Below, piece after piece: positions 24,960 through 59,531 of a DNA stretch of 64,000 nucleotides. Position numbers and translations under genes: made by a program. The notes beneath the pieces are model-generated. The model was not told where the DNA came from. It searched no databases and saw nothing but the letters and a program-made list of their open reading frames with translations. Where the stretch lies: NCBI RefSeq assembly GCF_016433145.1, contig NC_058133.1:192870374-192934373 (forward strand). Direction: 5' to 3'. This stretch comes from Gracilinanus agilis (Eukaryota). Every line of letters starts with the position of its first letter. The first letter of the stretch is position 1.

Positions 24960-25090
24960 TTTCCTCTCTTCCTTTCTTCTCCTTCCTTTTCTTCCTCCTT
25001 CCTTCCTTTCATCTCCTTTTCTCCCTTTCCTTCTTTCCTGACTTCCTTGCTTCCTTGTTTTCCTCCTTCTCTCCCTCCTTTCCTTCCCCA
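24960..25090. repeat. CT-rich low-complexity tract
   Basis: (CCTT)/(TC)-rich run. Confidence 0.8.
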
Positions 25091-25241
25091 AAGATGCCCC
25101 CATATCAGTGGTTCTCAAGGTCAGGAATCTCAAAACCAACAGAAAGATTCTTTGTGACAGAATGATACCCTTCCTTTAACTGTGAGTGGTGACAGTCAAA
25201 GAGGGACACTATGATCTCCTAGGAGTGGGAACTCCCTAGGC

Positions 25242-25449
25242 TAGTGATGGGCAAACTACTGCCCGAGGGCCAGATGTGGCCCCCTGAAATGTTCTATCCC
25301 CTCCCCCACTGCAACATTATTCCTAATCTGACGAATACAATGAGTAGGATATAATACAATGAAACTTCAAAAGAGTCACCTTAGAGACAGACTGACCATG
25401 AGCATTTTCTTTCCTTTGGCCCCCTCTTTAAAAAGTTTGCCTATCACTG
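25242..25449. mobile_element. hAT MITE
   Basis: TIRs tagtgatgggcaaact ... agtttgcctatcactg; degenerate 8-bp flanks ccctaggc/gcagaggc. Confidence 0.75.
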
Positions 25450-25869
25450 GCAGAGGCCATTCCCACTTAATTGAGTCCTATTTCATTCCAGTTTTTTGTT
25501 CCTTTTCTCTGAACCTGTTTGCTGCTAATATACTTAATGTGTGCTCAATTTATATTCACTTCTAGGTATGATAATGGTTCAAGTTAGTGCCTTGGAGCTA
25601 TTCCTTGTTTCTTCTTTCTCTGTATCCCTTTTATAATTTCTGTGATAGTCCCAGGAGCTTTTTTTTTCCCTCCCCAGATATCTTTGAGATCCATTTGACC
25701 CGGGTGCTACTGGATGAATGCCTCTGATGGAGCCACCACCCCTATTCCATTCTCCACCCCTATTCCCACTTCCTTAAATGGAATGTAGCCATGCTAGAAA
25801 CATCTGATCCCGTGCTATAATTAGTAAAGAATCAACAACCAATTCCTGATGTCTCCCTGGCTGTGTCTT

Positions 25870-27410: not shown

Positions 27411-28589
27411 TAAAGTCCATTAGATCTCCCATATATGACAGTACTGCAATTAATTGGTTTTGTGTAATAAAAACTTATGCTAATTTATTTAGGAAAAATT
27501 CAGTGGAGAAAAGATTAAGTTTGTAGACAACATTAAAAACTAGAAGAACTGAGCAAGTGGAAGAGATTATAACAATATATCACAAGGATACTTCACTCTG
27601 ATTAGGTAGGATTTATATTAGTCAACATTAGTAAACATAAAGGGTGATACCATAAACAAATTAGGTGAGTATGAAATTGTTTACCTGTTGGATCTATGTA
27701 TAAGGGAAGAATTTAGAATCAATCAACAGGTAGATAGTATTATGAGGTAAAATGAATAATTTTGATTATATTAAATTAAAAACAAAACTAATGCAACAAA
27801 GATTAGAAAGAAAGCAGAAAGCTGGGAAAAAATTTTTACAACAAATATCCCTGATAAAGGTCTCTTTTCTCAAATATAGAGAGCTACATCAAATTCATAA
27901 GAGTACAAGTCATTCCCCAATTGATAAATGGTCAAAGGATATGAACAGGTAGTTTACAGATCAAAAAAATAATTTAAGAAATCAAAGTCATCTATAGTCA
28001 TATGAAAAAATGCTCTAAATCACTCACTCTTGATTAGAGAAATGCAAATTAAAACAACTGTGAGGTATCACCTCATACCTATCAGATAGGTTAATATGAC
28101 AGAAAAGGAAAATGATAAATGTTGGAGGGGATGTAGGAAAATTGGGACACTAATACACTGTTTGAGGAATCGTAATTCTGAGTTCTGAGGAGCAATTTGG
28201 AACGACAGTGGTACCTTGACACACAAGTTTAGTTAATTTTATGGCCAAGCTTATAACTCAGTTTGCTCATGTGTCANNNNNNNNNNNNNNNNNNNNNNNN
28301 NNNNNNNNNNNNNNNNNNNNNNNNNNNNNNNNNNNNNNNNNNNNNNNNNNNNNNNNNNNNNNNNNNNNNNNNNNNNNNNNNNNNNNNNNNNNNNNNNNNN
28401 NNNNNNNNNNNNNNNNNNNNNNNNNNNNNNNNNNNNNNNNCTTACTTTATTGATCTACAGATAAAAAGTTATTGAGCAAAGATTAGTAACTGCTTAGATC
28501 TCCAGCTCTACTGCTTGACAGTCTTGCAGCCTGATGGGTCTGTAGAAGCCATGCCAATTTTAGCTGCTACACATTATTTACACTGTTTA

Positions 28590-29160
28590 ACTTTGACCAC
28601 ATCTCGAGATCTATCTATCATCTCCAGATAATCTGATAAAGACAGCTTAGTTGATAAGGAAGTAACAGATACCGAAGATCTTTTAGCTCATGCTTCCAGC
28701 TCTCTCCAGGAGCATGAAGTTTATTATATATACTTCAAGACTCATTTCACTCAAAAGAACCCTCCCCCCAAATTTAGCATTTGCATAGAAGCACAAATTA
28801 TGTCATATCAAAGCACAATAAAGTTATAGTTTTACAAATAATTTTCTTATGAAGATAATGCCGGATGAGAAAAAAGTCTCAAGGCTAAAAATGAGCCTCA
28901 CTCTATCTAAAAGTTATTTTGCCTGAACTTGCAACTCCATGACCTTGGAATGCCTGGAGCAGTTAGAGAGATATACCTACAGCTGCAGCTTTACTCTGCT
29001 GAGTGAAAAAAGGCTGTTAACTCATTAAGTGCTGGCTTACTAAGAACTTAAAGTTTTCCTAGAGGTTATAATGTTTTTCAATAAGAAAAGGTATGGATCA
29101 TAAAAGACGTCAAAAGAGGAGCCAGATTTTCATCCGAGACTCTGTTTCTCTCATTCGCCT
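28590..29160 (-). mobile_element. LTR-like repeat, copy 1 (related to 31180-31700 and partly to 34333-35207)
   Basis: Shared blocks tcgagatctat...gaagatcttttagctcatgcttccagctct and ggatca..gtcaaaagagg..cagatttt. Confidence 0.6.
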
Positions 29161-29565
29161 CCCACAACCACAGGTTTAAGAAATCAAGACATTATTTTAG
29201 TTTAGCTTGCAAATGCATGGCTGATGACTGAATCTAGTTTCTTTTATATTCTGTATTTTTTCTTTAGTTCTTCCACTTTTTGAATATAAGCTTTTATGGC
29301 ATCTTCTTTGGATATCCCTTTCAAAGAGTTCCAAGCATCCCATTTTGCTTTGCCTTTGAAGTCCGTCCTGCCAGGGCGGTCTGTATTTACATCTCCAACT
29401 GTTGCTTGTTTGTAGTGGGAATAGATGAACAATATCTCATCATCATTTGGTTTAGTCTTTAGGACTTTGACTTCTTGAGGCAGCTTTTTTTCTGAGACAT
29501 GCTGCAGACTAGTGTGATGGAGAGGACCGACTGAGATGTTGCAGCGAGCAAGCGTGCTCTAAGCC
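29160..29565 (-). pseudogene. DBI: Processed pseudogene of diazepam-binding inhibitor / acyl-CoA-binding protein
   Basis: Intronless; [61 protein letters not shown] (stop 29244). ATG at 29500 followed by a frameshifting deletion; short 5' UTR and partial 3' UTR; no own poly(A). Confidence 0.93.
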
Positions 29566-29965
29566 AGTACAAGTTGGACTACTGAATTTCCCATTTAAAT
29601 GAATGGAAATGCAATTAATCTGTTCCATTTTTTGGGTTTAAAAATGTATGAAGCAACAAGGTATTTGACTGATGCTGCTGGGATTTGAAAATGACTTTTT
29701 TTTTAAAGAAGAAAATATAACTTGCCCCTCTACGGGAAGCTGTGTGCCAAAGAACCAGTGTTATAACCCTTCTTTTTCCTCTTCCCCCTCCTGCTGAGCT
29801 GATATTGTGTTATTGCGTATCCCAGTTCTGTGTGGGTTTTTGTGAATCTGTGTGTGAAGTCTCTACTGCACTCTCCTGCAGATATGTGTAGTAAGCTGTG
29901 GTGTAATTTTTTTTTTTGGCATATAATAAACATGTTCAGCAGTAAAAAACAAACAAACAAAAAAA
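29566..29965 (+). pseudogene. Probable retroposed 3' UTR fragment of an unidentified mRNA
   Basis: 3' UTR-like composition, AATAAA at 29925-29930, A-rich tail at 29944-29965. Confidence 0.5.
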
Positions 29966-30176
29966 CCCAAACCCCTCCGTAGGCTGCTATCTAGTGGAGG
30001 ATGATGGAAGTTCACAAAATATCTCCTCTTGACTTAAAGCAAACACTCCCCATCCTGACTGATCATTTCTTAAATTACTCATGACTTAAGATGCTTGTGT
30101 ATCAAGGTACCACTGTATAACCAAAGGACTTTAAAACTGTGCATAATGTTTCATCTAGCAATAATTTTATTACTAC

Positions 30177-30685
30177 TATAAGAGTAAAAAATATGAGACT
30201 GGCTGTAAATTAAAATTTTATTAAATCAAAAGCAATAGGGGAAAAAGATGGAAAAATAGGAGAAAGATATATAGGTTACCTTCCTTATTACTTCATTTAG
30301 CTTGCTATTCTATGGCTGCCATGAGGTCCCCTACCCACACTCACAGGAGAGACCAGTCAGCTCCAAACATGGAAGCAGAGAGAACAACATTTACTCTTGC
30401 CTCAGTTTATCAAACTTCTCTGCCCACTAACTCTCACACAGCATGTCTCAGGAGCCAGCTATAGTTTTCTATTTTGCCTGGGTGGCCCAGTGGGGCAATC
30501 CATGGGGAAGTGCAGGGGACTAAGCCCTGCCCCTTGTCTCATGATCTCTTGACTGCCTTTTTCCAGTTGCTATTCTACCCTCTTGACTCAATTCATTCAA
30601 TGATTTCCTGGTCTCTGGGTGAACAGGAGATGAGGCCAAGTGTGTGAGCCCAGGAGAGGGAGGAAGAGAAAAAATTTCCTTCACA
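30177..30685. mobile_element. Probable solo LTR inserted in L1
   Basis: Interrupts otherwise contiguous L1 text; ends ...ttcaca; TSD ambiguous. Confidence 0.5.
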
Positions 30686-30965
30686 TACTAGGTCTATATT
30701 CCAAAGAGACTTAAAAAAAAAAGAGAAAAGGAGCCATTTGTACAAAGATGTTTATTGCAGCTCTTTTTGTGGCAGCAAAGAATTGGAAATTGAGTTTGGC
30801 AGTCAATTGGGGGATGGCTGAACAGGTGACATCTGGTTAATACTAATATCTTATAAGAAATGATGAGCAGGATGATTTTGGAAAAAACTGAAAAGACTTA
30901 CATAAACTGATGCAAAGCGAATTAGCAGAACCAGAAAAAACATTGTATGCAGCGACAGCAATATA

Positions 30966-31149
30966 TATATTTTTAAACCCTTAACTTCTATGGATTGGCT
31001 CCTAGGTGGAAGAGTGGTAAGGGTGGGCAATGGGGATCAAGTGACTTACCCAGGGTCACACAGCTGGGAAGTGTCTGAGGTCGAATTTGAACCTAGGACC
31101 TCCTGTCTCTAGGCCTGACTCTTAATCCACTGAGCTACCCAGCTGCCCC
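30966..31149 (-). mobile_element. SINE1_Mdo-like SINE
   Basis: Full-length; TSD gcgacagcaatat / gcaacagcaatat. Confidence 0.9.
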
Positions 31150-31179
31150 TGTAGCAACAGCAATATTTTTTGATGAACA

Positions 31180-31700
31180 ACTCTCGAGATCTATTTATAG
31201 TCTCTGATAATCATATAAGGACAGTTTAGTAGATAAGGAAATAACGGACACTGAAGATCTTTTAGCTCATGCTTCCAGCTCTATCTACAGGAGCATGGAG
31301 TTTATTATATATATTTCAAGACTCATTTCACACAAAAGAATCTCCCCCCCCAGAAACTTTGCAGATGCATAGAAGTTATAAATTTTGTCATATCAAAACA
31401 CAAAAGGTCTCATTGGCTTTAGAACAGACCAAGGCCAAGGCTGAATTTTGACTGAGTTCTTATCAGAAAGCCAAGTCGGGGAATATTTTTCTCAGGGTTG
31501 AATTGCCCCTGCTAAGGTTTTGGCCTTGGCGATACCAGGCAACTGCATTCCTGGCCAAAGGAGGAGAGTGTTAACCTTTTAAATGCTGACCCACTAGGAA
31601 CCTAAAACTCTTCAATAAGGCCACAATACTTTTCAACAAGAAATCACAAGGATCACAAAAGGGGTCAAAAGAGGTGTCTCAGATTTTTATCTGTTCTCTT
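31180..31700 (-). mobile_element. LTR-like repeat, copy 2
   Basis: Aligns to 28590-29160 at roughly 75-80% by eye. Confidence 0.6.
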
Positions 31701-32020
31701 ATTGGCTTCCCACAAACAACTATGATCTAGCTATTTGCAGTGATTCAAGACAATTGCAGAGACTCATGATGAAAAATGCTGTCTGCCCTCTGAGAAAAAA
31801 TTCATGGAGTCTGAATATAGACTGAAATAAACAATATTTCACTTTCTTTTTTTCTCATTTGAGATCTTTTCCACAAAATGACTAATATATAAAATCTATA
31901 ACAGATTGCTAATTTGTCTTGGGGAAGGGAGAAAGAAAGGAGGATGTGGCCTGAAATATCGCACAAACCTTGCCAAGTAGCTATAAATGATCAAAAGAAA
32001 AATAATTAGTTGATTAGTAT

Positions 32021-32632
32021 TGTACCACCTTTCAGATAAGGCATATGGATGCTTAGATTTACATTTATGAGAAAACCCCTCATATCAATCTTTAGACAAA
32101 ACCTAGATCCTTGGCCAGGGGTCTCTGAATAGCAAACACAGGTGGTTCAGATTCCCAGTTACACAGGACAAGGTTCAAACAATGCTCAATTCCCACAATC
32201 ACTGCCTTCCTTAGAGACTGCAGAAAAGAGCAAAATTTGATAGAAAGTTGCCCTGGGGTGTTTAACATATCACTAGCATTTCATTTATATTGCAGTTTGC
32301 AACCCAAGTAGACAGAGTGAATCATGTGTAAAGCCTCATAGACCAAAGTGGACCATGGGCAAAGTGACATCGGTTCCTTGGAAATGACAGGGCAACAACC
32401 ACCAAAACAAATGACCCCTTCCTTAGTCATTAATCAAGATGAAAAAGCATTCCTGAAAACCCCTTGTCTCACCTTTACTTACCTTACCTTACTATACTAG
32501 CTAGTTGGCTGTGTATGGCCACTCTATTACTTTATTCTCTTATAATAAAGCTTGTTTCCTTGCAATGGAGTCAGTCTGACCTGTCAATCAATTATTTGGA
32601 TGAGACCCTAATCAACCTAATAAGCCACATCA
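32021..32632 (+). mobile_element. Probable 5' LTR of the class I ERV
   Basis: Begins TGTACC, AATAAA near 32545, ends ...ccacatCA; followed by a PBS-like tggtgccc at 32637 and a leader running to gag. Confidence 0.65.
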
Positions 32633-33553
32633 TTTCTGGTGCCCACAGAAAACAGAATTGTTTTCAGCTTGACTTAGACCATCCTGAAGTAAGCTTGCTC
32701 CAGCCCTCCTCTGCTTACTCCTTGCCGTGGAATTTAATATAAATTATTATTCCATTTGAAAATCTATCTTCGATTAGTACCAGTATGTTTGACTGCCTGT
32801 TGTGCTGGAAAGGGGCTGGCAGAAGTCCCTGTGCGCACTGGTGGCATGGTAAAAAGTGAGGATGGTCCCAAACTTAAGCCTGTTGAACCAGAGAGTCCCA
32901 GGAGGAGTGGTGAAAACTTGCTTTATAAGAGAAGGGACACAAGAAGCTTGTTCTCTCTTGCTGGACACTTGTTGCTTTCTCTCTCTTCTCTGGAGCGTTT
33001 AACACTTGGTGTGCATTGGCTTATCTCACAGCCAGCCACTTGTAGAAGGATCTGATGAAGCTCCTGTAAAGTGGCAAAGAATTAGGGAGGCCAGATGATC
33101 ATGTGATCATGTGACATTCTTCTCGCCCCCATCTCTGACTCTGTCCTGACATTTTCCTTTCGTCTTTGAGTACTCAAGCTTAGTTGGGACACTGAATTAG
33201 GTCTTCATGGCCAGCGAGTCAAAGCTCCATTGGAACTCTGGGTTTGGGGTCACAATGAGACTCCCCCAAGCTGCTGGGCCTGGGGCCAGGGCAGATTGCT
33301 TCTGTGCCCATTTTAAGACCAGGCAGAACTCATTCTGCTGCTGCACCTAGATTTTTTTCTTCTTCCCTTCCCCTATTTCTTGTTTTTGGGGCTTTGGCAA
33401 ACAGCCACTGCACTCATCTCCCTGTCCTCTATAGGACAGACTTCTCTAATCTCATGGAATTCCCCGCTTGGCTATTTCCTTTCCATCTGGAAAAAGTTGG
33501 ATCTGCAAAACCCAAGAAATGCCTTATAGTTTACTGCAATAATGAATGGCCAC

Positions 33554-33750
33554 AGGGGGCAGCTGGATAGCTCAGTGGATTGAGAGTCAGGTCTAGAGAC
33601 AGGAGGTCCTAGGTTCAAATCTGGCCTCAGACACTTCCCAGCTGTGTGACCCTGGGCAAGTCACTTGACCCCCATTGCCTACCCTTACCACTCTTCCACC
33701 TATGAGCCAATACACAGAAGTTAAGGGTTTAAAAAAACAAACAAACAAAA
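33554..33750 (+). mobile_element. SINE1_Mdo-like SINE inserted in ERV gag
   Basis: Perfect 16-bp TSD aataatgaatggccac (33538-33553, 33751-33766). Confidence 0.93.
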
Positions 33751-34332
33751 AATAATGAATGGCCACACTATCTCCTAGAATGCGGAGAAGTATGGCCAGT
33801 AAACGGGACCCTAAATTATAACATTGTCCTGTAATGGGATCTGTTTTGCAAGAGGGAGGGGAAATGGACAGAAATCCCTTAAAGTTTAACCTCCATGGCA
33901 CTAGCACAGGACTCAAAAGTCAGAGAACAATGCAGGATGTACTTTGCCAGGATGGGTTTCTTCCCAGATGATGCTCACTTCTCCCCCATTTCCTGGATGA
34001 CTCCTTCCTGAGCCCTCCAGGAAAATCTCCCCTGCTAGCCATTGCCCTGCCTTCCACCTTGCGGGCAGTATCCAGCCCATTTCCTCCCCCTTATAGCACT
34101 CCTTCTGATCAATCTTTCCCCTCTCTCCTCCCTGCTCTCTACCTACCACTCCTACCACTCCCACCATTGCTATTACCCTGCGCTTGCCATATACAGAGCA
34201 GCACCCACTATGCAGCCCTGTCTAGGGACCCCCAAACCCTTTGTCCCCTCAGAACGATGGCACTGGGAGAAGGAATGGTGGATGTTCATGTCCCCTTCTC
34301 CATGTCAGACCTCTCCCAGATCGAGGATAAAC

Positions 34333-35207
34333 TGTGGAGAGCCATTGGATGTAGAAATGCCATTGGAGAAATAGGATCAAATTTAGGGCCTATTATCTGG
34401 ATTCCCTACGTGACCAATCCAGACTGAGGCAGTCTTTGTGTTTGGTCCTCGTCACCTGAGCCCAAAAAGCTCTGGTACCAGCAGGTAGGTTAATCCAAAA
34501 TCAATTTGATCCCTCCAAGAGGCTATTAGGAGTCATTTAGAGAAACAGAGTCTGTAACAGATATTTTATCTGGATCCCATTACAAAATCATCGGCAAGTA
34601 AAACTGTGTGTATGATTTTTCTGCACTGCATGTCAGGTCAGACAGAATGGGCCATCTAAGATAAAAATCTGAGGCTCCTCTTTTGACTCAGTCTTTGATC
34701 CCCACCTTTCTTAGAATTCTTATTGGAGAACTTTGAAGTGGTAGACCAGCATCTACTGAGTTAATGATTCCTTTCCTTGATAATTGAGAAGCCTGAATCC
34801 TAACAAATGTTACTTAGATAAGATTGCATATTTAGATTAGAACTGGCTCCTTTAGTCTGGACTTCATTTGGGCAAATGCAGGATTTGACTGGTGAGCATC
34901 TCCATGGGGTATTTTCTCTCCCAGAATTATCCCCTACTAAGTTGGTGGTTGAAATTTGACCATTTGTCTTTGTACCTTTATTCTTTAGACTTCAATGGGT
35001 TATGTGTGATTTATTACCCCCTTACAACTGTGGCTCTTTTTGTGTTCCTTGCTTGAAATCAGTATATAATAAACTTCCAAGCCCACAGAATTCGGAACAG
35101 CATGGGCTAACCACTAGTCAAGTTGTTCTCATTTTCTTTCTCCTGCCTTAACCATCCTATGCCACCGACGTGGACCACAAAACCATATAGGGGGCTGGCC
35201 CCCTATA
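34333..35207 (+). mobile_element. Solo LTR inserted in ERV gag
   Basis: TG...TA (probably a mutated CA), 6-bp TSD ataaac; splits SDLSQIEDKL from ESF. Confidence 0.85.
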
Positions 35208-35661
35208 ATAAACTTGAAAGTTTTCCAAGAATCTCACCAAATTCATAGAGTGGTTCAAATTGGTGACCTTGCAGATTGACCTGGCCTGGGCAGATTTATA
35301 CCACATTATTTCCTCATTTTCTCCTGCTGTACCATAGATGAAAAGTGGAGGATTTGGGATCTAGCCCAGGTGGTGAGGATGACATAGCTGAAACTAATGC
35401 AGAAGACAGATTTTCTATGGGGGCTGCTATAGTTCCCGTTGCTGACCCTTGTTGGGATTATCAATCAGCACGAGACTGAGAGAAAGGAGGCTATGTGATA
35501 AGGTGCCTGACTTAAGGCATGAAACAAGGAGTGAAGAAGCAGGTTAATTACAAGAAACTTAAGGATATAACGCAGGGCAGGGAAGAAAATCCAGCCTTGT
35601 AGAAGTCATGAAAAATTATACTAATATTGAACCTAAAATCCCAGAAGGAATGACAGTTCTT

Positions 35662-38600
35662 TTTTTTTTTTTGCCTATTTTATATCTTTTATTGGTATTG
35701 ATATTTAGCAGATCATTGAACAAAGTTAACCCTCAGGCTCACCTGACAAAGAATCATGTATTTGTGTGTGAATATATTTGTGGTGAACATCTTGTTTTTT
35801 AAGAGCCTTTGAGACAGCATCATTTTTTTTTCTACTAAAATTATTACATTATCTAGGCAGGTAGGTGACACAGAAGAAAACATCCTTAGCGTGAAGTCAG
35901 GAAGACCCAAGTTCCATTTTATCCTCAAGTATTTACTAGCTATGTGGCTGTGGGCAAATCATGTAATCACTGTTTGCCTCAGTTTCCTCAACTATAAAAA
36001 TAGGCATAATGATCTATAGGCATAAAGGGTCTACCTACCAGAGTTGTTGAAAGGAGTAAAGTGCTTAGCACAGTATCTGACACATAGTAAGTGCTTAATA
36101 ATACTTGTTTCCTTGCTCCCTCTATACCTTTCAGTTAATTAGTCTTATATTGAAGATATTCTGCAATAGAAAATTTATTGCAAAATCCTCCCCACTTCTT
36201 TCTCATGTTTTTATTTAGGAAGAGCAACTTGGGCTCTGGACTTACATTCCTAACTTGCTCTCAGATAAGCAAGTCCAGTTCCTATAGCATTTCTGCTACC
36301 TCTTCATTCAGGATTTCTGGAGAAAGAACCCTGAAAATCTGGGTTCAAAAACTGTTACTCATGAGCCCCCATATTCTCCGCCATATAAATCAATTATTTA
36401 ACATCGCCTTAATATCAATTAACCAATTAACATCAATTAGCCTTTATAAAGAAATATTTGCTGAGGATCAAAATACAAAAAGAAAGATTTATAATGATCA
36501 AAATACAAAATCATCTACCACTACCACCTTCATCATTCCCACCCCTGCCTTAATATTATTTCCTGGGGTTTTTTGGATGAATTTTATTTTGACCCAAAAG
36601 ATAAACCCAAACCAGTCACAATGCAAATTCCTGAAAACAACAATACAGCTTAAAAATGAATATGACCATATATACATTCTTAAACTTGTAGTTAAAATAA
36701 ATGTGTGTGCTTTTAATTTAACCTATTTGCTTTTTTCATGTAAAATTAATTGTGATTTTATCTAGTTCCATGAAGAATGAACTTCCTTGGTATTTTGACT
36801 GATAATGCATTAAATATTTAAGTTAACTTGGAAAAAAAGGTGTCTTCTTGCCAACATGGCAAGGTTAAAATCCTATATTACACTTCCTTCTAAAACTCAA
36901 TTCTTCCCTTTAAGATCGCAAATTCCAACTTAAAGTGGTTGCTACATAATTTTCTCCTTCCCATGGCAGAGTGGGTTACCTTTAGATAGAAGGCAGTGTA
37001 CTTCTGGGCTGATGAACCATTTTCTTCCTTTTTGGAGTCCCCACCACATTCATTTCTTAGTGTGCCAGGAGTCCAATGCCATCATTAGACATATGTAGAT
37101 CATTCTCAGCAATGATTTTATGGAGCTTTTCATGTTTCTCTTGGTTTTTGTGGTTGGATATTGAACTTTCCATTTAGTCCTGGTCTTTTCTGTGCAAATA
37201 CTTGGAAATCTTCTATCTTGTTGAATGCCCATACTTTCCCCTGGAAGTATATAGTCAGTTTTGATGGATAGGTGATCCTTGGTTGTAGACCCAGTTTTCT
37301 TGCCTTCTTAATATCATATTATAAGCCTTGTGGTCTTTTAGTGTAGAGGTTGCCAGGTCCTGTGTGATCCTGATTGGTGCCCCTTGATATCTGAATTGTC
37401 TCTTTCTGGCTTCTGGTAATATTTTTCTTTTACTTGGAAGCTCTTGAATTTGGCTATTATATTTCTGGGGGTTGTCTTTTCAGGGTCTAGTGTAGAGGGT
37501 GATCTATGGATCCTTTCAATGTCTATATTGCCCTCTTGTTGTAGAACTTCAGGGTAATTTTGCTGAATAATTTCTTTTAGTATGGAGTCCAAATTTCTAT
37601 TAATTTCTGCTTTTTCAGGAAGACCAATGATTCTCAAATTGTCTCTTCTAGACCTGTTTTCTTGATCTGTCAATTTCTCATTGAGATATTTCATGTTTTC
37701 TTCTATTTTATCAGTCTTTTGACTTTGCTTTATTTGTTCTTGCTGTCTTGAGAGATCATTGGCTTCTAATTGCCCAATTCTAGCCTTTAGAGACTGGCTT
37801 TCCTTTTCAATCTGGTCTATCTGGTTCTTCAAGGCTTCCAGCTGGTCATTTCTGGTCTTCAGTTTGCTTATCAATTCATTTGATTTCTGAGCCTCACTTT
37901 CCAATTGTGAAATTCTGCCTTTTAAACTGTTATTTTCTTGCCAGATCTCTTCCATCTTTCTCATACTCTCAGATTTGAACTCTTTAAGATCTTGTGACCC
38001 ATTTTCATTTTTTGGGGAAGGTTTGGATGTCTTTGTTTGTCCTCCTCTGTTTTTTGGGTTTTTTTTTTGTGCAGAAGTTATCAAGTGTTTGAGCCTTTTT
38101 CTTGGTCTTCTTGTTTATTTCTTGTTTGGCATTGATTGGCATCATTATGTTTTATCTGCCAGAAGGCTGAGTAAGGCAATCTGATTCTCTTTGTATGGAG
38201 TTAGGGAGCAGTTTTTTGCCTGAGGCTACTTTGTGAGTCTCTTAGCTTATCTGGGGGCTCTCCTGGGGTCTCTGGTCTAGCTGTTTTCAAGGTCGAGCCC
38301 CAGTGGTCCTAGCCAGCTGCCCAGAGCTTGGGACTTGGCCCACACTTTCTCCTCCACCTGAGATTTTCCCCTGAGTCTGAGCTTGCTAGGTGCTGCTGCT
38401 GCTGCCTCTCTCAGCCCCACTCCTGTGTCCAAGGTCTGAGTTTTCCAGCTACCTGGGATCTCAGATCTTGCTGCTCTTAGGGGCAAGTTCCTAGTAGTGC
38501 CAGCTAGCTGCCAAGGGGCTAGATTTTGTGCTGCTGCTCACTCTAACTCTGGAGTGCAACCTCTGCCTCTGGTACAGTGGGTGGGGTGGGGGAAGGTTGA

Positions 38601-42502: not shown

Positions 42503-43589
42503 TGACAAAGAAATAACTTAGGACCTTCCTAGGTATGGCTGTTTTCTGCAGGATCTGGATCCCTAACTTTGTCATAATTGTCAAGTCACTAAATGAAGCA
42601 ACTACAGGCTCTGATTCCCAGACTCTGCACTGGGGCCCTGATCAGCAGACTGCCTTCAGTACCTTAAAAGCCACGCTCACATCTACCCCAGAATTAGATG
42701 AACTCAACCTTGATAATCCTTTCTCTCTATTTGTTGATGAGAGAAGGGGACATACTTTGGGGATCCTTACTCAGATCTTGGGACCTGACCACTGCCTTGT
42801 AACCTACTTTTTTAAACATCTAGACATAGTATCTCTGGGGTGGCCTGTTTGCAAGTAGTTGCAACCATTGTCATGATGGTAGAGGAAGCTGCCAAATAGA
42901 CCTTTGGGCAGCCCCTAGAGGTTCAGGCCCCCCCCCCCCCCATCATGCCCAGGGTGTCCTTGAAACAAAAGACCACAGGTGGCTGGCCAGTGGTAGACCG
43001 ATAAAGTACCAAGCCTTGCTCCTAGACACACCTAACCTAACTTTGAAAGTGTGTCACACCTTGCCTACTGTCAGATTAACTGTTTCCTTTCCTAGGCTAA
43101 GTATGCAATGCATTTAGTTCTCCCTTCTCTTAATTGCATCATTACAGACTGATGGAATACCACAGAGGATGCAATCTGTCATCTTCCAGCTCTCCAGGAC
43201 TGTGCCCCATGGATAGAACATCTCTTTGGGACTCCCTTAAGTCCTTCCTCCTCTTGAGCACCCGGTGGTATTCCCTCATTTCCCTTTTGTTTTCACTATT
43301 GCTCTTTTTGCTATTTGGCCCTTGTCTGTTTAATTGCATTGCTATAATTGTGGCCTCTTGGCTTTCTCATTTCCAATTCCAGATGGTGGCTACTGAGTGA
43401 CAAGTATACCTTCAACCACTGGATGCTGTTGCTGTTGCCTTCCACTCCCAGAAGCCTTGTGATGATCCCTCCAAACCCCTCGCCCCCAACCAAGTAATAC
43501 AGAACCCTGCGCTCATCCTTGATTCTGCACTCCTTTTCAGCTGGAAGTAGTTCCAGAAGACTGACCTTTGCCTCTATCCTGGTTTTGGG

Positions 43590-44390: not shown

Positions 44391-46665
44391 AGGATCAAGC
44401 CTTTCCTAAGTTTAAGGCTGGACCCCAAATACAGGGGAAGACAGGCTTTTCTACAATAAAGATAATTAGTTAAATAAGACCAATTAATTAAAAGAAAACA
44501 ATACAAGGATCTGATTTCTAATTGGATAAAAAAGTTGAGAAGGGGAGAGTGAATAGGTTTGATTCCCTGAGTTCAAGAAAGGAGGTGTTCCCTTCCTCAG
44601 ATATCTGTAAACAATCAAAGGAACATGCAAACAATAACTGATTGATCAGCACAAGACCAGTTTTTAGATAAGACATATAAGTTGCTTGAGGTGTACAATT
44701 ATGAGAAAACACATCAGTCTTATGATCTGTCTGCATTTTGGTCAGCATAATCTAGACCAGTGTTGGTGAAGTATTGGCATGCGTGCCCAGCTGGCACAGG
44801 GGAGCTGCTCTGTTCTCTATCTTCCCAGTGTCCGAGGACATTTTTGCATGCTTCACTCCTCTCTCCAGCCTCCCAAGGCAAGCAATTCCTCCCTCTGCTC
44901 TCTAGGGTAATGCAGGGGGCTAATAGGCAGCTTGAAGTTGCAGTTTGGGCACGTGAACTTGAAAACCTTCGCCAATACTGACCCACGTCTCTCTTAGCCA
45001 TCATCCTGTATACCTTTGTCTCATTTCTAAAATCTTTACCAAAGAATGGTGGTGGTGGCTGAGTGTTGCCAGGTAGATGTAGAGGTCACGTACTGGGTCA
45101 GTCAGATGTGAGTCCAATTTGGTCTTCACAGGACTTCTTGGCTTGAGAGAGTCTCTGCACTCAGGGGCGACTGTGGTGGCTCTGCCTGATTAGTGGTAGT
45201 GTGGAGGGAAGGATGGAGGTCACAGAGATCCTGCATGCCCTGGTGACCCCAGCTCAGCCCACTGGCCACACTTCCAGAGAACTGCATCAACTTGTTCTCC
45301 ATGTGCCCTGCCCCAGGCATTTCTACAGGGCTGAGAGTTTGGGTGGGGCTTGCCTGGCGGGTGCCAGCATGTGTGACATGAGTCAGACTAGGAAGGGAAA
45401 GAGCACCTGGATCAATGGCTGATGGCCAGGGAAGGAAAGGGAAGAGTCTGCTGAGGGGAGACTTAATGGGCTAGAGCAGCTTAGGGTATATGTGGGTGGA
45501 ATGTACTTCTATACATTCTTCTGTGATGTTGGAGGAGAGCTTCAGAGCTGTCAAGGAGGATCTTGGGTTCAGGCTCAAATCATGTCTGATATGATGAGGA
45601 AATAAGGAAACTCCTTTCCCTGGAGATTCTATCAGGATGCTGAGTTGCTGAAGAATAGGATGTATTCTATTGGCTTGTCCTTTAATATCTCTGATGTTTT
45701 TACACAATCAGAATATCTCCTTCAATTTTTAAAACTTTTTATTTTTAAAATTTAATTTTTTATTTTAATTTAAACTTTAAATTAAAAAAAATTTTTAAAG
45801 ACAGAAATTGTTCTTTCTGTATCTTTTACCCAACCAACCATGAAAAAAACAGAGGAGAAGGAAAACAAAGGCTTGTAAGAAATATCTATTAGTGAAGCCA
45901 AACAAATGACCACATTGTTGTTCATTTTCAGTCATGTCCAACTCTGTCTCCTTTTGGAGTTCTCTTGGCAAAGAGACTGAAGTGGTTTTTGATTTTCTTC
46001 CCAATGTCTTTTTACAGATGAGGCAACTGAGCTAAAAAGGATTAAAGTGATCACAGAGCTAATAAGAGTCTGAAGCCAAATTTGAACTCAGGAAGATGAA
46101 GCTGCCTGATTCCATACCTGGTACTCTATACACTTTACAACTTAGATACTCCTAATTCATTACATTGGGCATGTCCCAAAATAGATATGGCATTCAGGAG
46201 GTGAATAGCATGCTTCATCCTTGACTTCTCTTTAATTCTTGAGCTCCTGATATAACACATGTACTGACATATATATATATATACATATGTTTATGTGTGC
46301 ATGCACAGGCATGTATACACAATACATATATAGATGTGGAAGCCCAAGGAATTTTTGTCTCTGCATTTTAGTGGGAAAACTATTGGCCTTGGGAAGCAGG
46401 AGACCTAGATTCAAGTCCAGATTTTGTCTTTTGATAGCCTCAGGTAAAGAATTTTTTCTCTTAAAGAAAATTTTTTAAAGATTAAGTCTCCTCATCTTGC
46501 CCAATTGGGAAGTTCAGGGGCTACTTATGGGCCCAAACCCATTTCTAGTCTTCAGGGTGGCTTTGAACTGCTCTTTTTCCAATCTGAGCTGCTTGGTCCT
46601 TCTTAGGGAAAGAAATAAACACTTATATGGCACTTATTACATGTCAAGCATCCTACCAAAGGCTT

Positions 46666-46850
46666 TTTTTTTTTATAAACCCTTAACTTCTGTGTATTGG
46701 CTCCTAGGTGGAAGAGTGGTAAGCGTGGGCAATGGGGGTCAAGTGACTTGCCCAGGGCCACACAGCTGGGAAGTGTCCAAGGCCAGATTTGAACCTAGGG
46801 CCTCCCGTCTCTAGGCCTGACTCTCAATCCACTGAGCTACCCAGCTGCCC
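46666..46850 (-). mobile_element. SINE1_Mdo-like SINE, present in copy B only
   Basis: TSD cctaccaaaggcttt / cctaccaaagacttt; empty site in copy A near 16235. Confidence 0.9.
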
Positions 46851-47101
46851 CCTACCAAAGACTTTTTATCAATATTACCTCATTTGATCCTTATACCAAT
46901 CCTGGGAGATTCGTACAATTATTTCCTCCATTTTATAATTGAAGAAACTGAAACAGAGACAAAGTGATTTGCCCAGTATCACACAGCTAGGTGGTATCTG
47001 ATGCCATATTTGAACTTAGTCTTCCTGACTTTAGACCCAGTGCTCTGTTCCATAGCTACCCCTTAGGCAACCTGGTGGCCTCTAGCTTCCTAGAAAACAT
47101 T

Positions 47102-50100
47102 ATATGATTATAGATTATAGTAATTAGAAGAATTATTCATAGGGAGAGGTTGGAGTATTAAAGGATCTAAGATGATATGGGGGAGAAAAAAGAAGAGGGG
47201 GGGAATAGTAGATGGCACCAAGAGAAATTTGAATGAATAAGAAAAATAGGATAATCTATACCACACAAAGAGGGCATGGGAAGAAGAGGGGATGAATACT
47301 ACTACAAGAAGGAGAGGAAGAGAGGTAATAATAGGTAATACTTAAACCTTACTCTCAGCAGAATTAATCCTGAGAGGGAAGAGCAGCTATATCCATTGGG
47401 ATATAGAATTCTATCTAACCCTACATAGAAAGTCAGAAGGGATAAACCAAGGGAAGCAGAGGGTGGGGAGTTCAAAAAAGGGAGAGAAAGAGAGGGGAGA
47501 GGGAATTCATTAGGCCTTAAAAAATAAAAAGAGGGAAACAAAAAGGGAGGGGGTGGAAAGGGAAGTAATCTAAGGGAGGGGATAAGGGGGACTGATTGAA
47601 AACAAAATACTGGTTTAAAAGGAAATAGCGTAAGAAGAAGGGGCAGAACTAGGAGAGGATATCAAAATGTAGGGGAACACACAGCTGATAATTATAACTC
47701 TGAATGTGAATGGGATGAACTCACCCATAAAACAGAAGTAAATAGCAGAGTGAATTAGAAAACAAAATCCTACCATATGTTGTCTACAAGAAATACACAT
47801 GAGACAGGAAGACATACATAGAATAAAAATGAAAAGATGGAGCAAAATCTATTGGGCTTCCACTGAGAAAAAGAAGGCAAGGGTTGCCATCATGATTTCT
47901 GACAAAGCCAAAGTAAAAATAGATCTGGTTAAAAGAGATAGGGAAGGCAATTACATCCTGATAAAAAGCAGTATAGACAATGAGGAAATATCAGTACTCA
48001 ACATGTATGTATACACCAAATGGTATAGCATCCAAATTTATAAAGGAGAAATTGGCAGAGCTCAAGGAGGAAATAGACAGCAAAACTATTCTAGTGGGAG
48101 ACTTGAACCTCCCACTATCAGATCTGGATAAATCAAACCAAAAAATAAATAAGAAAGAGGTATGAGAGGTGAATGAAGTCCTAGAAAAATTAGAGTTAAT
48201 AGATATGTGGAGGAAAATAAATAGGGACAAAAAGGAACACACTTTCTTTTCAGCTGTACATGGTACATTCACAAAGACTGACCATGATTTTTGGCAAAGA
48301 GACTGAAGTGGTTTTTGATTTTCTTCCTCATGTCTTTTTACAGATGAGGCAACTGAGCTAAAAAGGATGAAGTGACAGGATCACAGAGCTAATAAGAGTC
48401 TGAAGCCAAATTTGAACTCAGGAAGATGAAGCTGCCTGACTCCATACCTGGCACTCTATCCACTTTACAATTTAGCTACTCCTAATTCATTACATTGGGC
48501 ATGTCCCAAAATAGATATGGCATTCAGGAGGTGAATATTATGCTTCGTAACATGGCAAACAAATGCAAAAGAGCAGAAATAATAAATGTAACCTTTTCAG
48601 ATCATAACGCAATAAAATAATAATTAGTAAGGGCACATGGAAGGCAAATAAAAAATTAATTAGAAATTAAATCATTTGATTCTCCAAAATCAGTTAGTTA
48701 AAGGACAAATCATAGAAATAATTAATAATCTCATTGAAGATAATGACAATGATGAGACATCCTACCAAAAACTGCAGCTAAAGCAGTAGTCAGGGGCAAA
48801 TTTATATCCTTGAGTGCATATATTAACAAATTAGGGAGGGCAAAGATCAATGAACTGGGCATGCAAATCAAAAAACTAGAAAGAGAACAAATTGAAAATC
48901 CCCAGTTAAAAACTAAATTAGAGATTATAAAAATAAAGGAGAAATTAATAAAATCAAAAGTAAAAGAGCTATTGAATTAATAAATAAGACTAGAAGCTGG
49001 TACTTTGAAAAAAGTAATAAAATTGACAAAGTACTGGTCAATCTAATTAAAAAAAGGAAAGAAGAAAACCAAATTATCAGTATCAAAGATAAAAAGGGAG
49101 ACCTCACCTCTAATGATAAGGAAATCAAGACAATCATTAAAAACTATTTTGCCCAACTATATGGCAATAAACATAGCAATCTAGGTGACATGGATGAATA
49201 TTTACAGAAATACAAATTGCCTAGATTAACAGTAGAAGAAATAGAATACTTAAATAATCCCACATCAGAAAGAGAAATTGAACAAGTCATCAAAGAACTC
49301 CCTAAGAAAAAATTACCAGGACCAGATAGATTCACAATTAATTCTATCAAGCATTCAAAGAACAACTAATCCCAGTACTATACAAACTATTTGACATAAT
49401 AAGCAAAGAAGGAGTTCTACCAAACTCCTTTTATGACACAAATATGCTACTGATCTCAAAGCCAGTTAGACCAAAAACAGAGAAAGAAAACTACAGACCA
49501 ATCTCCTTAATGAACATAGATGCAAAAATCTTAAACAGAATACTAGCAAAAAGACTCCAGCAAGTGATCACAAGGGTTATTCATTATAATCAGGTGGGAT
49601 TTATACCAGGAATGCAAGGATGGTTCAATATTAGGAAAACCATTCACATAATTGACCATATCAAAAGCAAACCAACAAAAACCACAATGATTATCTCAAT
49701 AGATGCTGAAAAAGCCTTTGACAAAATACAACACCCATTCCTACTGAAAACACTATAAAGTATAGGAATAAAAGGGCCTTTCCTAAAAATAATAAACATT
49801 ATAAATCTAAAACCATCCACAAACATCATCTGCAACTGGGATAAATTAGAAGTATTCCCAATAAGATCAGGAGTGAAACAAGGATGCCCATTGTACCTCT
49901 ATTATTTAACATTGTACTAAAAATACTTGCAGTATTTTTATCAAAATATATCAAAGTACCAGCAATTAGAGAAGAAAAAAAATTGAAGGTATTAAAATAG
50001 GCAGTGGGGAAACCAAGCTATCACTCTTTGCAGATGATATGATGGTCTACTTAAAAAATGCTAGAGAATCAACTAAAAAGTTAGTGGAAATAATCAACAA

Positions 50101-52010
50101 CTTTAGCAAAGTTGCTACCCAAATTAATTTACTTATTTAGTGCTATACCTATCAAACTACCAAAAAACTTTTTTTACTGAATTAGAAAAAACTATAACAA
50201 AGTTCATTTGGAAGAACAAAAGATCAAGACTATCAAGGAAAATAATGAAAAAAAAAAAACGTGAAGGAAGGTGGCCTAGCAGTACCAGATCTTAAAATGT
50301 ACTATAAAGCATTTGTCATCAAAACGATATGGTACTGTGGGCAGCTGGGTAACTCAGTGAATTGAGAGCCAGGCCTAGAGACAGGAGGTCCTAGGTTCAA
50401 ATCTGACCTCAGACACTTCCCAGCTGTGTGACCCTGGGCAAGTCACTTGACCCCCTTTGCTTACCCTTGCCACTCTTCTGCCTTGGAGCCAATACACAGT
50501 ATTGACTCCAAGACAGAAGGTAAGGGTTTAAAAACAACAACAACAACAATATGGTACTGGTGAAGAGACAGAAGGGAGGATCAGTGGAATAGATTTGGGG
50601 TAAGTGACCTCAGTCTATGATAAACCCAAAGAACACAGCTTCTGGGACAAAACCCCACAATTTGACAAAAACTGCTGGGAAAATTTGAAAACAGTATGGT
50701 AGATATTAGGTTTAGATCAACATCTCACACCTTATACCAAGATAAATTCAGAATGAGTGAATGACTTGAATATAAAGAAGGAAACTATAAATAAATTAGG
50801 TGAGCACAGAATAGTATACTTGTCAGATCTCTAGGAAAGGGAAGATTTTAAAACCAAGCAAGAGTTGGAAAAAAACTACAAAATGTAAAATAAATAATTT
50901 TGATTACATTAAACTAAAAAGTTTTTGTACAAACAAAACCAATGCTACCAAAATTAGAAGGGAAGCAACAAATTGGGAAAAAACTTTATAACAAAAAACT
51001 CAGAAAAAAGTCTAATTACTCAAACATATAAGGAGCTAAATCAAATGTACAAAAAACCAAGCCATTCCCCAATTGATAAATGGGCAAGGGATATGAATAG
51101 GCAATTTTCAGGTAAAGAAATCAAAACTATCAACAAACACATGAAAAAGTGTTCTAAATCTCTTAGAATTAGAGAAATGCAAATCAAAGCAACTCTGAGG
51201 TGCCACATCACACCTAGCAGATTAGCTAACATGACAGCAAAGGAAAGTGGAGAATGTTGGAGGGGATGTGGCAAAATTGGGACATTAATGCATTGCTGGT
51301 GGAGTTATGAATTGATCCAACCATTCTGGATGGCAATTTAGAACTATTCCCAAAGGGCTTTAAAAGACTATCTGCCTTTTGATCCAGCCATAGCACTGCT
51401 TGGTTTATACCCCAAAGAGATAATAAGGAAAAAGACTTGTACAAAAATATTTATAGCCATGCTCTTTGCATTGGCAAAAAAATTGGAAAATGAGGGAATG
51501 TCCTTTGAGTGGGGAATGGATGAACAAATTGTGGTATCTGTTGGTGATGGAATACTATTGTGCTCAAAGGAATAACTGGAGGAATTCTATGTGAACTGGA
51601 ATGACCTCTAGAAATTGATGCAGAGTGAAAGGAACAGATCCAGGAGAACATTGTACACAGAGACTGATACACTGTGGTACAATCAAACATAAAGGACTTC
51701 TCTACTAGCAGCAATGCAAGGATCCAGAGCAAGGCTGAGGGACTTATTAGAAAGAAAACTAGCCACATTCAGAGGAAGAACTGTGGGAGTAAAAACACAG
51801 AAGAAAAACAACTGCTTGAACACATAGGTTGATGGGGATATTATTGGGGAGGTAGATGCTAAACGATAACTAGTCCAACTATCGATAATATGGAATTAGG
51901 TCTTAATCAATGATACATGTAAAACCCAGGGGAGTTTGGGGGAGAGGGAAAGAACATGAAATATGTAACTATGGGAAAATATTAAAAATAAAATAAATTA
52001 AAAAAAAAAG
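47102..52010 (+). mobile_element. 5'-truncated L1 with a broken ORF2 and poly(A) tail
   Basis: EN/RT motifs ([26 protein letters not shown]; [11 protein letters not shown]; SLFADD), A tail at about 52000, TSD-like aaaacatta / aagacatta; internal deletion near 50110. Confidence 0.95.
50338..50544 (+). mobile_element. Marsupial SINE inserted in L1 ORF2
   Basis: 15-bp TSD aacgatatggtactg / aacaatatggtactg. Confidence 0.9.
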
Positions 52011-52692
52011 ACATTAATGCCAAACTTAGTTTGGGTGTCCATTCAGCTCAGAACTTTGCAGCTCAAGAGATTTTCCAGCCTCAGCCTCTTCCATTGCTAG
52101 GATTACATGAGACACCATGTCCAGGAATAACTATTTTTTCCTGTGTCACAGTTTTCTCATAAGTAAAATAATTCTTACGCTATTTACCTCATAGGGATTT
52201 GAGAAAAGTGCATTGTAAACACTGATGTACTGTAAAAATCATTTCTCTGCCAAATCTATTTGGTTCTCTCTAGTTTTCTATCTATGATCATTTCTTATTT
52301 CTTAGTCTTTCTGTATGTTTCTCAAGAGGTCAATTAGTTAAAAAAAAGATGAATTATCCTTTTGGAAATTCCACCAAATGACAAGTATCCAAACTTGGAT
52401 GGGGCTTTGGGGTAGCGTCTGGAAAACTAACCGTAAAAAGAGATATTCTGGGAGCCTCTGATGACCACTTTCCACTCTCTTCTGAGAATATCAGAGACTC
52501 ATTAGCAAGATATTAGGACAAAAAACACAAGTGCTCATTCTTTCCTTCTCTTTTTGATGATTTTTGCTTCATTTTTTATTGTTATCTCCCCTCCTTCACA
52601 GGAAGCAAATGTAGAAAGGGAGAAAAGAAGAAGAAAAGCAAAGTAGAAGAGGATTTACTCCTCAAGCCCCATTTTATTTTCTCTATCCCTCC

Positions 52693-53620
52693 NNNNNNNN
52701 NNNNNNNNNNNNNNNNNNNNNNNNNNNNNNNNNNNNNNNNNNNNNNNNNNNNNNNNNNNNNNNNNNNNNNNNNNNNNNNNNNNNNNNNNNNNNNNNNNNN
52801 NNNNNNNNNNNNNNNNNNNNNNNNNNNNNNNNNNNNNNNNNNNNNNNNNNNNNNNNNNNNNNNNNNNNNNNNNNNNNNNNNNNNNNNNNNNNNNNNNNNN
52901 NNNNNNNNNNNNNNNNNNNNNNNNNNNNNNNNNNNNNNNNNNNNNNNNNNNNNNNNNNNNNNNNNNNNNNNNNNNNNNNNNNNNNNNNNNNNNNNNNNNN
53001 NNNNNNNNNNNNNNNNNNNNNNNNNNNNNNNNNNNNNNNNNNNNNNNNNNNNNNNNNNNNNNNNNNNNNNNNNNNNNNNNNNNNNNNNNNNNNNNNNNNN
53101 NNNNNNNNNNNNNNNNNNNNNNNNNNNNNNNNNNNNNNNNNNNNNNNNNNNNNNNNNNNNNNNNNNNNNNNNNNNNNNNNNNNNNNNNNNNNACCGTTGT
53201 GGAAGGGCCTGAGCGAGATGGGGTTCTGGGCTGAAGAGCTCGTGCGTATGCGTTTGAGGGGCAGAAGTGAGGTGTCACTCGGAGAAGGGGTTAATAGACC
53301 TGCTTGTGAGGGAGCTAGGGAGAGGGATTGTGGGGATGGAGTCAGACTTGGGAGAGGTAATTATAATTCCGCATATTGGGGAGAATTGGAGAGAAGGTCG
53401 TGGGGAGGGGGTAGAGATGGTTTACTTATGACTACCTGTTTGTTGGAGAGAGCGTCTGTATATGGGGGCCACTTGGAAGGAGTGGGGCGGGATGCTTATG
53501 CATATAGTCAGGGTATCCGCGTATATAGGGATGGGTGCCGGGGAGAAGGCTCAGCTGGACGGTGGGGAGATGTCCGCGTGCATTAGACACTGGGTAGCGG
53601 GGGAGGGAAATAGGAACGGT
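52693..53620 (+). promoter_or_regulatory. Probable ORMDL3 promoter/exon 1 region, mostly inside a 500-N gap
   Basis: Raised CpG and GC content right after the gap; ORMDL3 has a non-coding first exon that is not seen elsewhere. Confidence 0.45.
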
Positions 53621-54789: not shown

Positions 54790-56330
54790 TAATCAGTCAA
54801 CAGGTACTGCTTGCCAGAAACTATGCTAAGCACTGGAGTTACAAGGAAAAAGCAAAGATTGCCCTTATCTTAAAGGAATTTACATTCAAATGGGGAAGAC
54901 AACATGTGCCTACATAGGTGCAAAAAAGCTGCATACAAAGTAGATGGAAGATCACATTGAGGGGAAGTTGCCAGCCAGCTAGGGGGGACTGGGAAAGACT
55001 TCCTGCAAAGGTGGGTGGCATTTAGACTGAGATTGAAGGAAGCTAGGGATTCTGGGAGGCAGAAGTGAGGAGGGAGAGCATTCCAGACATGGGGAAACAG
55101 CCCATACAAAGGCCCACAGATGGGAGATGATGTGTCATGTGTGAGGAACAGCAAGTGGGCCAGTGTGGCTGAATTGAAGAGTACACAAAGGGAGTAAAGT
55201 GGAAGAATATTCGAAAGAGGAAAGGACCCAAGCTGTGAAGAATAGGGAAAGGTGATTTAGTCAGTTCACTTGGGAAACTTTGTAGAGAGGAATTGGGAGT
55301 CTTGCCTTGAGACAGAACTTAGAGAGACTTGAGACAGAATTTAGAGAGCTATTGCAATAGTTTATGTGGGAGGTGACAAGGGAACTAAGGTGGCAGCTGT
55401 GTAAGTAGAGAGAAGGGGATCTACGTGGGAGAGATATGATAGAGAAAAGACAAAAGTTAGCAACTGATTATATATTATAGTGGAGTGGAGAGCAAGTTGA
55501 AGATGACACTGAGGTTGTGGATTTGGGATCCTAGAAGGATAGTGAATAGGGGGAAGAGAGTTCAAAAGCAGGGTAGGCTTAGTGGGGGTGGGGAGATTAC
55601 AAATTGTATTTTGGATTTGGAAAGTTAGATTTCAAAACCAGAACTGAGAAGAAAGACTAGCACTGAATATATGGATCTGGCAGAGGTGGTAATTGAACTC
55701 ATGGAAATAAAAAGATCATCAAGTCATGTAGTATAGAAGAAAAAGAGAAGAGAACTCAGATTGAGCCTTGAGGTGTACCCAGTGAGCGGGTATGGCATGG
55801 ATGCAGAACCAGCAAAGTTGACTGAACAGTGGTTAGACTGGAGAAGTCTAAAGAAGACAGCATCATAAAAACAGAGATGAAAAGAGTATCCAAAAGAGGC
55901 GCTGATCAACAATGTCAGATGTTGCAAGAGAGGCCAAGGATTGGAATTGAGAAGAGGTCATTAGATATGGCTATTCAAGATCTTTGGGAACTGAGGAGAG
56001 AGCACTTTCCTTTGAATGTTGAGGTTGGAAGCCAGATTGCTGAGGGTTTAAGAGAGGGTGAGAGGAGAGTCAGTGCAGACACTGAGTGTAAATGGCTTTT
56101 TCATGGAGTTTAGCTGAGAAAGAAAGGAGAGTGACTCTAGGTGGCCGGCATGGTAGGATTGAGTGATAATTTTCTTTTTTTTTTTTTAAGAGTTAAAGAA
56201 ATTGGATTTGTTTTGTAGGCAGCAGGGAAGAAGTTAATAGGAAGAGATGGAAAATTAGAGGGAACAAAGAGATAGTGGTGGTGGGGAAGGGAATTTGGGA
56301 TTAAGGGTTTGTGTAAAAAACTTGGCTTTG
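54790..56330. mobile_element. Old L2-like LINE fragments
   Basis: Phrases such as ctatgctaagcactggagttacaag and purine-rich L2 ORF2 remnants. Confidence 0.6.
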
Positions 56331-59357: not shown

Positions 59358-59531
59358 ATGAATGTGGGCACGGCGCACAGTGAGGTCAACCCCAATACGA
59401 GGGTGATGAACAGTCGGGGCATCTGGCTCTCGTACGTGCTGGCCATCGGGCTCCTCCACGTTGTGCTGCTCAGTATTCCTTTTGTCAGTGTCCCGGTCGT
59501 CTGGACCCTCACCAACCTCATCCACAACATG
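59358..59531 (+). CDS. ORMDL3: ORMDL3 first coding exon
   Basis: Acceptor tttcag at 59333; ends AACATG|gtgagg. Confidence 0.96.

Follow-up and report, generated by a model that had tools for sequence, protein, structure and literature searches.

The stretch of DNA analysed here, a 64-kb window from the opossum Gracilinanus agilis (contig NC_058133.1), contains the gasdermin gene GSDMA and the start-codon exon of ORMDL3, and about 2.4 kb of the DNA upstream of GSDMA occurs in it twice. Block A (14685–16833 and 19190–19481) lies at the gene itself; block B (44978–47102 and 52005–52650) is found about 30 kb away, in unchanged orientation and facing away from ORMDL3. With a probability of about 0.85, block B is a pseudo-promoter, i.e., an old duplicate of the 5' end of GSDMA which was made at the DNA level and has become an ordinary, neutrally decaying relic. 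The alignments show that B is a copy of the beginning of intron 1 (~50 bp), all of exon 1, the proximal promoter and ~2 kb of DNA beyond it, and that the direction of duplication was from A, the syntenic and presumably ancestral copy, to B.

Structure and orthology of the duplicated block

The window was compared with itself by BLAST, and low-copy pairs were sought after repeated families had been filtered out. Four collinear pieces on the same strand were obtained (14695–16462 with 44990–46854, 16237–16499 with 46853–47102, 16488–16833 with 52005–52370, and 19190–19471 with 52368–52643), with E-values ranging from 0 to 4e-33; they were the sole long low-copy pairs of the window. The collinear, same-strand recurrence of the GSDMA upstream block, which had been described in an earlier note on this DNA, is borne out by these matches, and the block coordinates given at that time were correct to within about 50 bp. 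Overall, A and B are 81% identical in the aligned columns of a gapped alignment (the BLAST figure of 70–73% counts gaps), with a Kimura two-parameter (K2P) distance of 0.22. This similarity is distributed unevenly, since the initial ~700 bp are 87.5% identical, as against 78% for the remainder; the corresponding K2P distances are 0.138 in the core (A 14740–15450) and 0.261 outside the core. No conserved open reading frame (ORF) common to the two copies was found.

For comparison with eutherians, the GSDMA loci of dog (L001), cow (L003) and mouse (L004) were used, each with 10 kb upstream of the gene; exon 1 was located in dog with a dog mRNA contig (L002) and in mouse with mouse mRNA contigs. 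The dog exon 1 is non-coding and lies at L001:8416–8498, about 1.5 kb upstream of the start-codon exon. The core of A (read from 15367 to 14893) matched dog 7921–8395, directly upstream of this exon, with 64.5% identity over 496 columns (E 2e-41), and the core of B (45652 to 45202) matched the same dog stretch with 61% identity (E 4e-23). Over ~475 bp and at the syntenic position, the core of A also matched cow (E 3e-30) and mouse (E 7e-14); the cow promoter matched both copies and the mouse promoter A only. These promoter matches were the sole opossum-eutherian matches when the region from 13.3 to 59 kb of the window was compared with the three loci. Thus, with the eutherians as outgroup, the core of A is orthologous to a stretch just upstream of exon 1 which is present as a single copy in dog, cow and mouse.

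The mouse exon 1 lies at the spot homologous to the predicted opossum exon 1, as placed with the mouse mRNA contigs, and the start codon of the mouse gene is in exon 2 (PMC3789809). The splice donor of exon 1 could be aligned in dog, cow, mouse, A and B; its eutherian form is CTG|GTAAG, and copy A has TTTG|GTAAAG, with the exon ending at 14743. A simple scan for donors and TATA boxes had missed this real donor, which was revealed by the cross-species alignment alone. Homology between A and B fades about 50 bp into intron 1. A conserved core promoter of ~200 bp was delimited on the minus strand at 14880–15090, with counterparts at L001:8200–8400, L003:7850–8045 and L004:8070–8270. Dog, cow, mouse and A have in common an E-box (CACCTG), a 29-nt block which is identical save two columns across the four sequences, a GGGGTGGGGTCAC motif and a CATAAA motif, the latter situated ~25 bp before the start of the dog mRNA contig. 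The view that the block represents the GSDMA 5' region can therefore be made more precise, as it includes the proximal promoter conserved among therians and all of the non-coding exon 1 together with the splice donor.

Since homology spans the promoter and runs on for about 50 bp past the exon-1 donor, and since B has neither later exons nor a poly-A tail, B was copied as DNA and not via mRNA. In these respects it differs from processed pseudogenes and retrocopies, such as the DBI/ACBP retrocopy of this window, with which it shares the character of a non-functional, gene-derived fragment.

The duplicated DNA is a genomic mosaic and not a single element, because stretches found solely in the A/B pair are interleaved along the block with a MIR-like piece (A 15560–15850, B 45914–46216) and a piece resembling a short interspersed element (SINE; A 16237–16499, B 46853–47102), both of which occupy matching places in the two copies and match further copies throughout the window. 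In addition, each copy carries insertions of its own. The insertion private to A contains a minus-strand L1 3' fragment (17212–17975) and SINEs (18356–18675). In B, the smaller insert carries a young SINE (46666–46853), which is ~93% identical to other copies in the window, and the L1 yielded an RVT_1 match at 49342–49755 (E 4e-20). The duplication predates the L1 and the SINE which split B, as had been claimed before, since an empty counterpart site exists in A for each of these insertions. A part of B (45965–46216) is present a second time inside the L1; the copy takes in the MIR-like core with non-SINE flanks on either side. It arose by local templated re-copying, later than the insertion of the L1 and about four times younger than the A/B duplication.

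Decay of copy B

Changes in the two copies were polarised at 225 columns where dog, cow and mouse agree, and changes confined to A were compared with those confined to B by a binomial test. The eutherian base is retained by both copies at 136 of these columns. B alone has changed at 21, in addition to 3 deletions, and A alone at 4 (p = 0.0009); after dropping four columns beyond the edge of homology, the ratio is 17 to 4. The 17 changes in B, at ~156 conserved sites, correspond to 10.9%, which equals half of the p-distance outside the core (21.8%/2), and on this basis the promoter of B appears to have changed at about the neutral rate per lineage while the promoter of A was held. Changes were noted in every motif listed above: the E-box of B reads CACCCG, the GGGGTGGGG motif reads GAGCTGGGG and CATAAA reads CACTAA, and the 29-nt block has suffered one substitution and a 1-bp deletion. 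Accordingly, the promoter at work would be that of A, whereas B has the look of a dead copy.

One-sided constraint of this kind also leads to a core which is only half as diverged as its flanks, and gene conversion is unnecessary to account for it. That gene conversion had kept the core better conserved was in fact rejected, as the excess conservation is one-sided, with A being conserved and B not. Retention of the therian-invariant positions, which a functional promoter should display, was not found in B; the suggestion of a regulatory-only duplication that still works does not agree with losses at eutherian-invariant promoter positions being about five times as frequent in B as in A.

A difference was also seen in the CpG dinucleotides of the core, where A keeps 7 (14700–15100) and B keeps 3 (45000–45400). 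By eye, five CpGs of A are TG or CA in B, and two CpGs of B are TG or CA in A. The loss of CpGs in B fits relaxed constraint or decay by methylation.

Several points weigh against the interpretation of B as a dead relic of A. Its presumed "dead" status is deduced from sequence decay. The Poisson interval on the B-only count is wide, and constraint on B could have lasted for as much as about half of the time since the duplication. Of 160 conserved sites, 136 are retained in B, as is the splice donor, which leaves room for weak residual activity. In mouse, the mRNA contigs begin at the CATAAA motif or upstream of it, which makes a role as TATA box uncertain. Age and ancestral state are derived from this one marsupial locus, and the copy number of exactly two holds within the 64-kb window.

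Origin, age and alternative explanations

The presence of a second gasdermin gene was examined with a profile hidden Markov model (HMM), which was constructed from 50 eutherian GSDMA proteins, excluding the human entry, and was run against every ORF of the window; the exons of GSDMA and ORMDL3 were searched one by one and not as joined spliced models. Nine profile-matched exon pieces of GSDMA, with exon E-values from 1e-42 to 8e-4, span profile positions 1–446. The start-codon exon was identified as gasdermin-A, the representative search match being full-length gasdermin-A of the squirrel monkey; the best 120 entries of a subsequent word search were all eutherian. No gasdermin exon was detected outside 6308–13279 in any ORF of the window, with all other profile matches having E > 1, and no second gasdermin exon was obtained in the window by tblastn of all ORFs from the GSDMA side. 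The low-copy self-comparison of 14.4–64 kb likewise gave no homology to intron 1 or to later parts of GSDMA outside the gene. A second set of gasdermin-N and gasdermin-C exons, as a complete tandem paralogue should have, is thus missing from the window, and the absence of coding exons beside B, which had been proposed before, was confirmed by both types of search.

The following sequence of events could explain these data. A, which is situated 1.4 kb upstream of the start-codon exon, would be the ancestral working copy; the 5' end of GSDMA would have been copied as DNA to a site about 30 kb away, against the ORMDL3 promoter region and in the same orientation. Having no exon to splice to, B would have changed neutrally since the duplication, with hits in each motif which A shares with the three eutherians, and would later have been broken up by an L1, a SINE and the small local re-copying event. 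The duplication was most probably incomplete when it arose, one of its breakpoints lying in intron 1. A copy which was without a gene from the start or from very early on is favoured, because homology to intron 1 or later parts of GSDMA is absent elsewhere and because the promoter of B bears a full neutral load; non-coding DNA as old as the duplication has kept an identity of 78% and is readily detectable. A partial duplication needs one event, and a copy of the whole gene followed by deletion needs two.

Two routes to such a partial copy can be envisaged, and it is rather probable that one or the other was taken. Either a small tandem duplication, with one end 50 bp inside intron 1 and the other slightly before the ORMDL3 promoter, took place and its copies would later have been pushed apart by ~25 kb of L1, endogenous retrovirus (ERV), SINE and retrocopy insertions, or a 2.4-kb copy was dispersed on the same strand. 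The routes are not separable, because ~8 kb of the interval between A and B are not recognisable as retroelement with the tools used. The neutral K2P distance of 0.26 between the copies means 0.13 substitutions per site per lineage. Under our own assumption of 1.5–3e-9 substitutions per site per year, the duplication would be roughly 45–90 million years old, and B is then predicted to be common to at least the didelphids. The age, as well as the mode of origin and the transcriptional death of B, is what we infer from the comparison of the two copies.

Among the other explanations, the relic of a complete tandem GSDMA duplicate, which would subsequently have lost its gene body beyond the first 50 bp of intron 1 by deletion or overwriting, deserves most attention, albeit as an unlikely one. 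The position and orientation of B between GSDMA and ORMDL3 would suit a gene copied head to tail; on its gene side, B borders on ~580 bp of unassigned DNA, followed by an L1 fragment and ERV sequence (38.9–44.4 kb), which could mark a rearrangement, and the locus is capable of tandem expansion, as is seen in mouse (PMC3789809). However, neither a gasdermin exon nor intron homology is present in 14.4–64 kb, although non-coding DNA of the same age and 78% identity was easily detected, and a second event would be needed with a breakpoint coinciding with the end of homology. Moreover, since the promoter of B bears the full neutral change, any working gene would have been lost early, within less than about half of the elapsed time (95% level). 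It is doubtful, too, that B marks an independent duplication of GSDMA in marsupials, of which the second gene is intact in other marsupials and only a stub is left in this didelphid. If other marsupials did keep a gene behind their copy, a marsupial case would be added to the repeated expansions of this immune gene family.

That B is a working regulatory duplicate, acting as an alternative or bidirectional promoter or enhancer for ORMDL3 or as the driver of a non-coding transcript, is improbable. B does lie within ~0.6 kb of a CpG-rich stretch upstream of ORMDL3, and it has preserved the donor of exon 1 as well as 85% of the promoter positions conserved in eutherians; yet its change at the neutral rate has hit the E-box, the GGGGTGGGG motif, the CATAAA motif and the 29-nt block, it is split by a 4.9-kb L1 and a SINE-bearing insert, it contains no well-scoring donor besides the inherited one, and it has no conserved ORF in common with A. 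Very little speaks for an interspersed repeat with many genomic copies, be it a long terminal repeat (LTR), a DNA transposon or a composite element. Parts of the block are SINE- or MIR-like and the copy count covers the window alone, but the parts found only in the pair have no third copy in 64 kb, and in three eutherians the core has its orthologue in the GSDMA promoter and exon 1, which are syntenic and single-copy there. A domain of a transposon protein was not detected in the one ORF of block B which was scanned, the other ORFs of the blocks being short and unscanned, and a translated ORF of the block (15036–15389, minus strand) matched nothing in 5.8 billion proteins, which is weak evidence. 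Hardly credible is an assembly artefact in the form of an uncollapsed haplotype or a misjoin, for which runs of N at 28277–28440 and 52693–53192 might be quoted; the copies differ by 13–26% (K2P) and carry different retroelement insertions with target-site duplications, which is far beyond allelic divergence.

As a pseudo-promoter, B resembles known partial duplicates of the 5' ends of genes, which likewise consist of promoter, exon 1 and the start of intron 1 copied at the DNA level, without downstream exons, and which show neutral decay and private retroelement insertions. It differs from them in being 30 kb from its parent and beside the promoter of another gene, in showing no visible junction with a second gene fragment, and in having boundaries which are not tied to a larger unit. 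With the Gsdma/Gsdma2/Gsdma3 cluster of mouse (PMC3789809), B shares the locus, an interval which tolerates tandem duplication, and the head-to-tail orientation, but the mouse copies are complete, expressed genes and the opossum copy is without any gasdermin exon. The statement that rodents expanded Gsdma in tandem applies to mouse and does not extend to rat, which, like human, was reported to have one gene (PMC3789809). In the mouse locus, the last part of a further gasdermin gene was seen at L004:1–1714, 8.3 kb upstream of mouse Gsdma, and belongs to the known mouse-specific tandem cluster.

Taken alone, B is of little weight, being one more decaying fragment of a duplication. Together with A, it amounts to a natural experiment, in which one promoter of ~475 bp would have evolved in parallel under selection and free of it over tens of millions of years. 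From the contrast between A and B, in combination with the dog, cow and mouse alignment, the bases under constraint in the GSDMA core promoter can be read, i.e., the E-box, the 29-nt block, GGGGTGGGGTCAC and CATAAA. The switching-on of GSDMA in skin and upper gut is poorly understood.

Features of the window and surroundings of the blocks

Coordinates of the duplicated blocks, their insertions and the neighbouring genes are compiled in Table 1.

Table 1. Features of the 64-kb window which are relevant to the GSDMA 5' duplication
Feature	Position	Strand	Basis or remark
GSDMA coding region, intact; start codon at 13279 in exon 2	6308–13279	-	profile HMM
Block A part 1, putative parent copy: intron-1 start, exon 1, promoter, ~1.5 kb distal flank	14685–16833	-	self-BLAST, alignment
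Predicted non-coding GSDMA exon 1, copy A; 5' end approximate	14743–14864	-	dog exon 1 carried over by alignment
Proximal GSDMA promoter, block A core	14893–15367	-	matches dog, cow, mouse
Insertion private to A, 2.36 kb	16834–19189		B empty at 52368–52370
Block A part 2, distal end of duplicated unit	19190–19481	-	74% identity to 52368–52650
Block B part 1a, putative derived copy: intron-1 start, exon 1, promoter, distal flank	44978–46574	-	self-BLAST, alignment
Exon 1 homologue, copy B; donor TTTG|GTAAAG kept	45040–45161	-	alignment
Decayed copy of GSDMA proximal promoter, block B core	45202–45652	-	matches dog, cow
Insertion private to B, carrying young SINE	46575–46852		empty site in A
Block B part 1b, old SINE-like piece common to A and B	46853–47102	-	self-BLAST, alignment
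L1 private to B; fragmented ORF2, poly-A tail, short target-site duplication	47103–52004	+	A empty at ~16490
Second copy of B 45965–46216 inside the L1, 256 bp, 93.8% identical	48291–48546	+	self-BLAST
Block B part 2, ending 43 bp before run of N	52005–52650	-	self-BLAST, alignment
Run of 500 N, gap or masked	52693–53192		sequence
CpG-rich stretch, probably edge of ORMDL3 promoter island	53193–53600	+	CpG observed/expected ~0.6–0.75
ORMDL3 start-codon exon	59358–59531	+	PF04061 ORMDL matches, 98–100% identity on exon part

The location of B next to the ORMDL3 promoter, as was asserted in the earlier note, is plausible, and the evidence for it is indirect, consisting of the short distance from the end of B to the run of N and of the CpG-rich stretch directly after this run. 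Apart from the latter (53200–53600), no DNA rich in CpG lies between B and the ORMDL3 start-codon exon. Searches starting from ORMDL3 gave eutherian-looking contigs and one UniRef entry of the Tasmanian devil.

In eutherians, LRRC3C is situated between ORMDL3 and GSDMA. In the opossum, no long leucine-rich-repeat ORF was visible in 19500–38000, as inspected by eye and not by profile. The DNA between A and B includes an L1 ORF1 on the minus strand (37341–38114; Transposase_22, E 6e-13) and a fragment of ERV pol RNase H on the plus strand (42517–42855; E 8e-6); a pair of ERV LTRs was sought in 37–45.5 kb and none was found. A search against Rfam matched no family.

Two further low-copy pairs were noticed. 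A direct repeat of ~560 bp with 67% identity (28594–29170 and 31174–31718) brackets a SINE and the DBI/ACBP retrocopy, which is on the minus strand at 29247–29558 (Pfam ACBP, E 7e-27). A same-strand match with 64% identity over 212 columns connects 3291–3498, downstream of GSDMA, with 54976–55185, upstream of the ORMDL3 coding exon, and may be an old repeat.

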